Assembly: GCA_023334545.1 (NCBI GenBank) | Contig: JAADVB010000095.1 | Coordinates: forward strand, 1-62,077 | Direction of reading: 5' to 3' | Source of the DNA: Salisapilia sapeloensis CBS 127946 | Lineage: Eukaryota > Protista > Oomycota | DNA length: 62,077 nucleotides | Shown here: positions 60,334 through 62,077 of the stretch, one piece after another | Position numbering within the stretch: the first letter of the stretch is position 1 | Layout: each line of letters opens with the position of its first letter | Program-made: the position numbers and the translations under genes | Notes under the pieces: model-generated | What the model was told of the DNA's origin: nothing | Seen by the model: only the letters and a program-made list of their open reading frames with translations | The model's database searches: none

Positions 60334-61345
60334 ATGGTAGGCTGTTTGAATGACTCCATCGCTTTGGGCATTGTGTATTAATGATGTGGATGGTCTATAG
60401 CCGGAAAAGAAGGATAGCAATGTCATGCGCGACATCAAGGTCGACAAGCTCGTGATCAACTGTTGTGTTGGTGAATCGGGTGATAAGCTCACTCGTGCCG
60501 CACGTGTGTTGGAGCAGCTCACGGGCCAGAAGCCTGTGTACTCGAAGGGTAAGCTTTTTTTACTTTCGTAAACAAAAGCAAAGAACCGCCCTAACGGGCT
60601 ACTTACCCGGGTCAATCGTCCATTTGCCATGCGACCCCCGTGGCAATGCGATTGGCCTTAACCACTGCCACCGATCCGGGTGCCGGGATCATCTTGTATG
60701 ATTGCGGTAGTCTACTCTTTTCCATTCGAAAGGATAGTCCGTCCCCGATCGCGTGTGATTCAAACGAGTACGATTGACATGTCTTCCGATTATGGAAGCA
60801 CTGTCATGGGGGTTTGAGCACTCTACTCTTTTTATTTCATATACATTCACGTGAGTTGATGTTAAAAAGAGAAGAATCAATTGCAGATGGAGGAGGGCAT
60901 ACATGCCATCCATACAAGTCTTTGTAGCATACTTGAAGACAGAGTGACTGACATTTTATGAACTATAGCTCGCTACACGGTCCGTTCGTTCAGCATCCGT
61001 CGTAACGAAAAGATCTCGTGCCACGTTACCGTCCGTGGTGAACTCGCTTCGGAGATCCTCGAGCGTGGCCTCAAGGTCAAGGAGTACGAGCTCAAGAAGA
61101 AGAACTTCTCGGACACTGGTAACTTCGGTTTCGGTATCCAGGAACACATCGACCTTGGTATGAAGTACGACCCTTCCACCGGTATCTACGGTATGGACTT
61201 CTACGTCGTCCTTACGCGCCCGGGTGCCCGTGTTGCCCGCCGCAAGGCCCGTCAGAACCGTATCGGTGCGTCCCACCGTCTCCACAAGACGGACGCCGTC
61301 AACTGGTTCCAGTCCAAGTTCGAGGGTATCGTCCTTGACAACTAA
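60334..61345 (+). CDS. RPL11: 60S ribosomal protein L11 (uL5); exons 60334-60336, 60401-60548, 60969-61345
   Basis: M|[49 protein letters not shown]|[16 protein letters not shown]...[12 protein letters not shown]...[12 protein letters not shown]. Confidence 0.97.
60583..60820 (+). ncRNA. Unassigned structured RNA element in RPL11 intron 2
   Basis: GC-richer island with several manually found hairpins inside an outlier 420-nt intron; fits no family I recognise. Confidence 0.55.
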
Positions 61346-62077
61346 GTTGGATCGCGTCTTGTGTAAACACTTATCGAATGCGCTCGTTGCGTTCGCATAG
61401 GCAGGAGATTTGATTCAAATACAGCAACGCCTGAGAAAAAAATGAAAACTTGTATGCTTATGGTGGAAGTATCGTTGTGTGGTAGGGCCAAGAGTCGGTG
61501 GAGTAGCAGGGTTATAGATAGCTTTTGTGTGATTATAGCTTGTAGGAGCAAGGATGATTTCACAAGACAGGTACATCGCTGCAGCATATCGCTGGATGTG
61601 TAAACAATCAGAGTGAACACATTTGATTACAAAGGAAAGCTTGAATACTGGTGAATTTTGCTCGGTTGGTCCTTGGTACTCAACGGAGAGAAAGCTCGTA
61701 ACTGCTATGTAGACAACGGTAACTTGGGCACTTGAAGTCTGTACAATTGTCTACCTTGTTGACGATCTTAATAAAGTTTTCTTTGCACCTTTCTCTACTA
61801 ATATTATTAATCTAGATGCACATAGTACTATGCGGACCTGGTAACGAAAGCATGTTCTGATGAATTGGATTCATCCGCTCATGAATACCACCAACAATTT
61901 AAACAAAACTAAGAATACGAATCCACCGACATATGCTCAGGCTTTCTCCAAAGAGACAGACGATTAATAGCGCTACCGTGACTGTTTCGTTTGGGGATGC
62001 AATCTACATACAATCGTTTTCGCCACTCGGGATGCAGCACAAATTTTAGAGATGATAACCTTATAATTACCAATGAG

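Follow-up and report, generated by a model that had tools for sequence, protein, structure and literature searches.

We describe a structured RNA domain of about 235 nt (60537-60772) in the second intron of the RPL11/uL5 gene, in which the end of the preceding exon and the productive splice donor are predicted to be paired with intronic strands. We give about an even chance to the reading that this domain is a cis-acting mask of the donor and probably a feedback element sensed by a protein. The domain is present in the same RPL11 intron in 9/9 distinct oomycete species or isolates.

The RPL11 gene and its long second intron

A three-exon RPL11/uL5 gene occupies the 3' end of the window (the whole stretch of 62,077 nt that was analysed; all coordinates refer to its forward, (+), strand). 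Exon 1 ends with the ATG (60334-60336) and is followed by intron 1 (60337-60400, 64 nt), exon 2 (60401-60548), intron 2 (60549-60968, 420 nt, GT..AG, phase 1 after Lys50) and exon 3 (60969-61345). Exon 2 was assigned from its translation and from the junction 60336^60401, which was observed with a GT..AG joint in the RNA contigs of run X7, and the junction 60548^60969, likewise a GT..AG joint, was present in 4/4 RNA runs. The part of uL5 encoded by exon 3, used as the query, is 85-87% identical to uL5 of Pythium, Phytophthora and Peronospora. The likely true branch region of intron 2 extends from CUGAC at 60948 to the acceptor AG at 60967-60968 (60948-60968); CUGAC or CUAAC is found at the matching 3' position in Phytophthora cactorum and in locus L008.

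The comparison covered orthologous loci from 11 oomycete sources (Pythium oligandrum, P. insidiosum, Phytophthora cactorum, Peronospora destructor, three Logan assemblies, two Saprolegnia, Achlya and Aphanomyces astaci), comprising nine distinct species or isolates and the incomplete Peronospora destructor locus L010. In all of these loci an intron interrupts the gene at the same codon position, and every one of these introns is long (293-972 nt). In the window it much exceeds intron 1 in length and folds more stably than shuffled sequences (z = -4.6). The RNA domain explains why intron 2 is consistently several-fold longer than typical oomycete introns.

Pairing of the splice donor

According to the original prediction, the segment CTTACCC (60602-60608) is the exact reverse complement of the productive donor GG|GTAAG (60547-60553). 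This proved correct, and all the other motifs listed there were also found in their places when the sequence was checked. The two segments form helix P1, with the donor GG|GUAAG as the 5' strand and the "anti-donor" CUUACCC as the 3' strand, in the RNAalifold consensus of six sequences, in the minimum free energy (MFE) structure and by pair probability. Two hairpins lie between the strands: P1a (60554-60577; CUUUU...AAAAG), whose length varies between species, and P2 (60588-60599; GCCC-UAAC-GGGC). The branch-site-like CUAAC (60591-60595) is located in the loop of P2, and AG is missing between 60582 and 60709, both as originally predicted.

For the six Peronosporales-type sequences RNAalifold yields a three-way junction of P1, P1a and P2, with compensatory changes at four pairs of P1a, and the insertions into P1a in Pythium insidiosum and P. 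oligandrum fold into hairpins of their own. The stem of P2 has 3-5 bp and its pairing is kept through C-G to U-G changes, while the UAAC is invariant in nine loci.

The presence of the anti-donor exceeds the chance expectation, as only 24 of 2000 shuffled versions of the upstream sequence contained a 7-nt stretch with Watson-Crick complementarity to the 12 nt that follow the hairpin. The anti-donor is kept in 5/6 Peronosporales-type loci, with 6/7 bp remaining in L008. In ensemble folds of these six sequences, which spanned exon position -20 to 15 nt beyond block B5 (see below), six pairs of P1 had probabilities of 0.8-1.0 in the window; the P1 probability was at least 0.88 in four of the six sequences, 0.44 in P. 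oligandrum and 0.25 in L008.

The position of the 3' strand is also constant, as it begins 2-3 nt past P2 in 9/9 loci (3 nt in L008). This strand is 6-7 nt long and has a perfect upstream complement in every lineage. Three sequence versions of the helix were observed: GGGUAAG/CUUACCC in the Peronosporales-type loci, GGGGACC/GGUCCCC in Saprolegnia and Achlya, and GAGAAC/GUUCUC in Aphanomyces. Thus, the helix that contains the anti-donor shows covariation.

The anti-donor taken with the two preceding bases, UACUUACC (60600-60607), is identical to what we take to be the conserved 5' end of U1 snRNA. We also considered a riboswitch-like alternative, in which the anti-donor would pair with block B3 (UACCC:GGGUG), and rejected it, the pair probability being approximately zero in 6/6 Peronosporales-type folds. 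The Saprolegnia version of the rejected pairing would be GGUCCCCGG:CCGGG(U)GACC.

Helices P0, P3, P5 and P4

The 5' strand of helix P0 is the exon end UGUACUCG (60537-60544; positions -12 to -5 relative to the donor) and its 3' strand is block B5, CGAGUACG (60765-60772), so that exonic GUACUC(G) pairs with intronic GAGUAC. The latter is invariant in seven Peronosporales-type loci. In the window P0 has a pair probability of 1.0, and 5/6 Peronosporales-type loci reach 0.9-1.0, despite lengths ranging from 201 to 516 nt, and the MFE structure of the window includes P0 together with P1, P1a, P2 and P3. The complementarity of the P0 strands taken alone was not significant against shuffles when G-U pairs were allowed. 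Covariation is not possible for the exonic side of P0, which is coding sequence, or for the donor side of P1, which is a splice signal; hence these pairings are supported by conservation and thermodynamics only, which for P0 means the positional conservation of GAGUAC and the ensemble probabilities.

Helix P3 (60609-60658) is formed by GGGUCAAUCG (60609-60618) and CGAUUGGCCU (60649-60658), which enclose a distal hairpin. Its duplex in the window has a free energy of -16.8 kcal/mol, which was equalled by 0/300 shuffles. Elsewhere the helix reads GGCCAC(C/G):(G/C)GUG(U)GCU, with the bulged U in the same place, and is situated 9-13 nt upstream of block B3 in all lineages. Thus, when the window strands are compared with the GGCCAC-type strands of other species, P3 is seen to covary.

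In the nine-sequence RNAalifold consensus and in both covariance models (R1 and R2, described below), block B3, ACCGAUCCGGGUG (60670-60682), pairs with block B4, CGUCCCCGAUCGCGU (60740-60754), forming the irregular and highly conserved helix P5. No other 12-mer of the intron is as conserved as UCCCCGAUYGCG, which is part of block B4. The GGG:CCC part of the helix is invariant, whereas the closing pair is A-U in five and G-C in four of the nine sequences. In P. insidiosum a unique U>C change in B3 is paired with a U>G change in B4, and in the window a UU>GA change in B3 converts the usual U-U / U-Y internal loop to the Watson-Crick pairs G-C and A-U. P5 is capped by the variable stem-loop P4 (60683-60739), which is branched in the window and has compensatory changes in its pairs.

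In the folding model P0, P1, P3 and P5 meet in a closed four-way junction, both in the window and in the other Peronosporales-type sequences, and this predicted junction buries the exon positions -12 to -5 and the donor positions -2 to +5.

Several features of these segments vary between the loci. In L001 (619-1590) and L004 (3233-4047), with introns of 972 and 815 nt, the P3 arm has grown to approximately 250-300 nt, while the flanking P3 strands are unchanged; in its behaviour the expanded arm resembles an expansion segment. Block B5 reads GUGAGUAC, a perfect donor consensus, in L001 (1088-1097) and L008 (2748-2753), and U/CGAGUAC in the other loci. Judged by its letters, B5 is both donor-like and complementary to the exon.

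The window intron also contains an exact 11-nt direct repeat, TCTACTCTTTT (60711-60721 and 60822-60832), which includes a UACUC resembling the exon strand of P0. The possibility that such exon mimics (UCUACUCUUUU, two copies in the window) serve as decoys for B5 was rejected, as UACUC is found at the matching position in no other species.

Conservation of the domain across oomycetes

When the introns were compared by blastn and MAFFT, we observed several conserved blocks amid otherwise unalignable sequence: B2, GCCYUAAC(G/C)GGC, with the segment directly after it; GGCCAC(C/G); GGUGUGCU; B3, CUUUCYGGGUG; and B4, UCCCCGAUYGCG. Blocks B2, B3 and B4 are common to Saprolegniales and Peronosporales, and B5 (GAGUAC) is a block in the Peronosporales-type species. 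Among the oomycete DNA examined, the block motifs are exclusive to RPL11 intron 2.

The relationship between the two lineages was also seen with covariance models. Model R2 was built from the P3'-P5-P4 segments of six Peronosporales-type sequences only, whereas model R1 was built from nine sequences. R2 produced exactly one match per Saprolegniales locus, always inside the RPL11 intron (Achlya, E = 3.8e-7; Aphanomyces, E = 1e-5; the two Saprolegnia, E = 1e-4 and 6e-4, the latter more precisely 5.7e-4). It also recovered the incomplete Peronospora copy, and gave no other match in the 62-kb window or in two outgroup loci. R1 behaved alike.

As for the outgroups, the brown alga Pylaiella littoralis (L124:1620-2480) has an RPL11 intron of approximately 830 nt at the same codon position and in the same phase, with the ends ...TCCAAGG|GTGAGT ... 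TTAAG|CACGCTAC. This intron contains none of the oomycete blocks, hence the intron position seems to be older than the RNA domain. In Chrysophaeum there is no intron at that position. A metagenome search with the pattern TAACGGGCYNNTTACCCG produced 112 loci, none of them adjoining RPL11 and all being chance matches.

Wiring of the domain in Saprolegniales

In Saprolegnia, Achlya and Aphanomyces the 5' strand of P1 is located 5 nt upstream of P2, so that the helix is wholly intronic and the donor lies outside it; its predicted pair probability is approximately 1.0. The closing helices differ from genus to genus. In Achlya the exonic UACUCG pairs with CGAGUG just upstream of P1 (0.9), in Aphanomyces there is a long-range AGGUACCU:AGGUACCU helix (0.9-1.0), and Saprolegnia has neither the Achlya-type nor the Aphanomyces-type helix. 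A conserved structure that contains the donor, consisting of P0 and P1, is present in the six Peronosporales-type sequences and absent in Saprolegniales.

Given the intronic P1 of Saprolegniales and the lineage-specific closing helices, we may conclude that the core is ancestral and that direct masking of the donor is clear only in the Peronosporales-type species, among which the window belongs. Such masking is thus not found everywhere and could be secondary in the Peronosporales.

Splicing and retention of intron 2

The RNA evidence comprises contigs and unitigs of four RNA runs, a kind of data from which rare isoforms can drop out. In run X1 a unitig (60519-60997) contains the unspliced intron 2 with both exon borders, at a depth of 548 versus 25,000 for the spliced path. 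In run X5, which represents a related strain, an unspliced contig (60519-60831) crosses the 5' exon-intron boundary at a depth of 12.4 versus about 1,076 or more, and no contig of this run contains intron 1. Hence unspliced intron 2 constitutes roughly 1-2% of the steady-state RNA, approximately 98-99% being spliced in the sampled conditions. Apart from RNA that keeps all of intron 2, no non-productive form was seen in the contigs of the four runs.

If intron 2 is retained, the first in-frame stop is the TAA at 60569-60571. The original prediction had pointed to this stop as part of the switch; its existence is true yet uninformative, since almost any retained intron yields an early stop.

Many runs of 2025 (X5-X19) contain a close relative of the window organism. 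Over 312 nt (60519-60831) its intron has ten substitutions and one deletion, exon 3 differs at four sites, and there are zero changes within 60585-60611. We attempted to use these variants as a test of covariation, and discarded it because the 11 changes were mixed and uninformative.

Comparison with known RNA families and 5S rRNA

Rfam searches of the window, the intron and seven orthologous loci, at the gathering and at permissive thresholds, produced only chance matches (RNAI, Vax2os1 and Fibro-purF). The Rfam 5S rRNA model gave no match at E up to 10 in stretches of 226 to 1,101 nt of these introns, and scans for known aptamers, including the TPP type, were negative, although a novel aptamer is conceivable. 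Several strings of the conserved blocks presumably resemble 5S rRNA and U1 snRNA. An origin of the blocks from either RNA is no more than a lead: the strings do not follow in collinear order, and there is no covariance-model support.

The string CCCGAUYGCG of block B4 in particular bears what we take to be a likeness to helix III/loop C of 5S rRNA. In the intron it is the 3' strand of helix P5 and not a hairpin loop, and the rest of the 5S likeness is specific to the window. The P5SM-type three-helix architecture, 5S-like and with equivalents of loop C and loop E, was not found in the intron, where there is a four-way junction and a different order of blocks. In bacteria, uL5 contacts loop C of 5S rRNA at positions 42-43 (PMC7812874). 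Mimicry of 5S rRNA by the intron 2 domain is unproven.

Proposed mechanism and its alternatives

Helices P0 and P1 include exon bases that are absent from the excised intron; hence the domain must function in the pre-mRNA rather than after excision. U1 snRNA has to compete with any helix that covers a 5' splice site. In its folded state the domain would make the exon end and the donor inaccessible to U1 snRNP, and the masked donor would lead to retention of the whole intron 2 and so to an unproductive RNA with the stop at 60569. The invariant helix P5 and the junction could be the docking site of a protein whose binding keeps the fold stable. To judge from yeast RPL30, RPS14B, RPL22B and RPL7B, this protein would most likely be surplus uL5 or an assembly intermediate of the 5S RNP, which would provide negative feedback. 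Conserved structures in introns of ribosomal protein (RP) genes do bind the encoded protein in the cases of RPL30, RPS14B, RPL22B, RPL7B, RPL18B and RPS22B (PMC8047918, PMC4838235, PMC12311795, PMC13232506). Under the sampled conditions the brake would be mostly off. The dominance of the spliced form in 4/4 RNA runs counts against this reading, as does the result that the Rfam models showed no likeness to 5S rRNA, since mimicry of rRNA is the usual hallmark.

A fuller version of this mechanism is held more tentatively, at somewhat below an even chance. It takes the domain as an RNA sensor of both major oomycete lineages, in which free uL5 or an unassembled 5S-RNP intermediate would dock on P5 and the junction and lock the presumed cis copy of the U1 5' end onto the RPL11 donor. 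The wiring would have been rebuilt between the lineages, P1 including the donor in Peronosporales but not in Saprolegniales.

The conservation of the core (P1/P2, P3, P5/P4) in Saprolegniales without the donor would also be expected if the core bound a factor for a purpose other than uL5 feedback, for instance a general signal of growth or stress, a chaperone function in splicing or a kinetic slowing of it, with the donor pairing of Peronosporales being incidental or modulatory. The efficient splicing in all runs agrees with this explanation, as does the fact that rRNA mimicry was not detected. We nevertheless consider it unlikely, if far from negligible, since among the oomycete DNA examined the element is confined to the RPL11 intron, in 6-7 species the donor and the exon end have their complements preserved as CUUACCC and GAGUAC, and the characterised conserved RP-intron structures of such a kind are all autoregulatory (PMC8047918, PMC12311795, PMC13232506).

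Another function to be weighed is that of a constitutive "zipper" by which a long intron is spliced more readily. With 220 nt looped out by P0 the effective intron is shorter, and splicing is efficient. However, P0 closes at +224, leaving 176 nt to the branch region (CUGAC at +400), so that the donor and the branch point are not brought together, and no helix placing the donor beside the branch point was found in the intron. Moreover, a donor buried in P1 should hinder the binding of U1, as is established for 5' splice-site hairpins, and a zipper is therefore rather improbable.

A long, well-folded and conserved intron of an RP gene is the usual home of a snoRNA, and ACA and UGAUGA-like strings are visible by eye; hence intron 2 could host an independent stable non-coding RNA, snoRNA-like or other, processed after splicing. 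This is contradicted by the use of exon bases in P0 and P1, by the searches, in which no Rfam family was found in the window and seven orthologous loci and no C/D or H/ACA box among the conserved blocks, and by the coverage of the intron, which is a single flat unitig continuous with both exons, with no separate abundant RNA. Such a host role thus appears quite improbable.

The original prediction of structure-controlled splicing in an RP gene is plausible, and it is supported in the part that places the donor in a conserved helix within an RP intron, as seen for P0 and P1. The part that invoked an alternative donor and an isoform targeted by nonsense-mediated decay (NMD) is unsupported.

The donor-like site at 60851

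The GTGAGT at 60851-60856, which had been proposed as a regulated second donor, is indeed present. It is situated outside the conserved element, and would give a 118-nt intron, a normal size for oomycetes, to the AG at 60967-60968, with CTGAC at 60948 as a possible branch site. In contrast to the anti-donor, whose conservation was likewise expected and is observed, this site has no positional conservation: a GTGAGT-like donor is absent from the matching region in Ph. cactorum, P. insidiosum, L008 and L001, that is, the counterpart is missing in 4/5 other Peronosporales-type introns. The chance expectation is 0.3 GTRAGY per 420 nt at the composition of the window, and GTGAGT at 60851 is a chance motif.

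The predicted junction 60850^60969 was absent from the contigs of the four RNA data sets, and no joint of any kind at 60850 was found in any of the runs, though the retained intron was assembled at a depth of 548 and the exon unitigs reached 25,000. Given these losses, a regulated switch from the donor at 60549 to 60851 (or a cassette exon ending at 60850) producing an NMD-targeted isoform is very improbable.

Relation to known splicing-control elements

The closest likeness is to yeast RPL30 and RPS14B, where, as here, the pre-mRNA of an RP gene folds the exon end and the 5' splice site into a structure. In yeast, binding of the own protein blocks spliceosome assembly; in the present case the unspliced RNA is unproductive owing to the stop at 60569. 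There is no sequence or structural homology between the yeast elements and the oomycete domain. Those are a kink-turn or a simple stem-loop, whereas here we observe a four-way junction of approximately 235 nt with what we presume to be a cis copy of the U1 5' end, and uL5 is a candidate binder only.

Conserved intronic structures also occur in yeast RPL7B, RPL22B, RPL18B and RPS22B, where they govern splicing (PMC12311795, PMC4838235, PMC13232506). In RPL7B the protein-bound structure competes with a zipper stem that enhances splicing, while in RPL11 the structure pairs directly with the donor.

The 5' splice-site hairpins of tau exon 10, SMN2 (TSL2) and engineered yeast genes are similar in that U1 snRNA faces competition from an intramolecular helix covering positions -2 to +5. 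They are local stem-loops, whereas here the helix is an arm of a large conserved junction and its partner strand is situated 54 nt downstream. The plant P5SM element of TFIIIA pre-mRNA offers an analogy, since there too a 5S-RNP protein is linked to the control of splicing by a structured pre-mRNA element; P5SM, however, can be recognised as a mimic of 5S rRNA and acts on a cassette exon, and in RPL11 we found neither a match to the 5S model nor a cassette exon. Splicing coupled to NMD, as in C. elegans rpl-12 and the human RPS13/RPL3 type, involves a conserved alternative site; no such site was seen among the Peronosporales-type introns compared, and no alternative junction in the contigs of the four runs.

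Only for yeast and a few animal genes is it understood in detail how ribosomal proteins act back on their own pre-mRNA, and for uL5, a component of the 5S RNP, there is no reported example. In the reviews and screens consulted we found no description of autoregulation of RPL11/uL5 by splicing (PMC8047918), and RPL11 is absent from the text of PMC7732827. If the proposed mechanism is true, it would be the first autoregulation of uL5 at the level of splicing and a new structural class of RP feedback element outside fungi and animals.

This large element has been preserved on both sides of the Saprolegniales-Peronosporales split, and its helices are clear and mutable. Its hosts include major crop and fish pathogens as well as transformable laboratory species. 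It thus provides a directly testable case for how the supply of 5S RNP might be balanced, and an example of one conserved RNA core with a different wiring to the splice site in each lineage.

Ends of the RPL11 transcript

In RNA contigs with the adapter directly attached, the RPL11 mRNA starts at approximately 60316, leaving an 18-nt leader, and is polyadenylated at approximately 61421-61429. One contig of run X7, of low depth (15.7) and with short flanks, connects 60500 with 61070, the joint having CA..GC ends; most likely it represents RPL11 of another organism or a chimera, and not a splice. In run X1 a contig extends beyond 61500 at a depth of approximately 4,000, so that either the 3' end is longer in that organism or a downstream transcript overlaps the gene.
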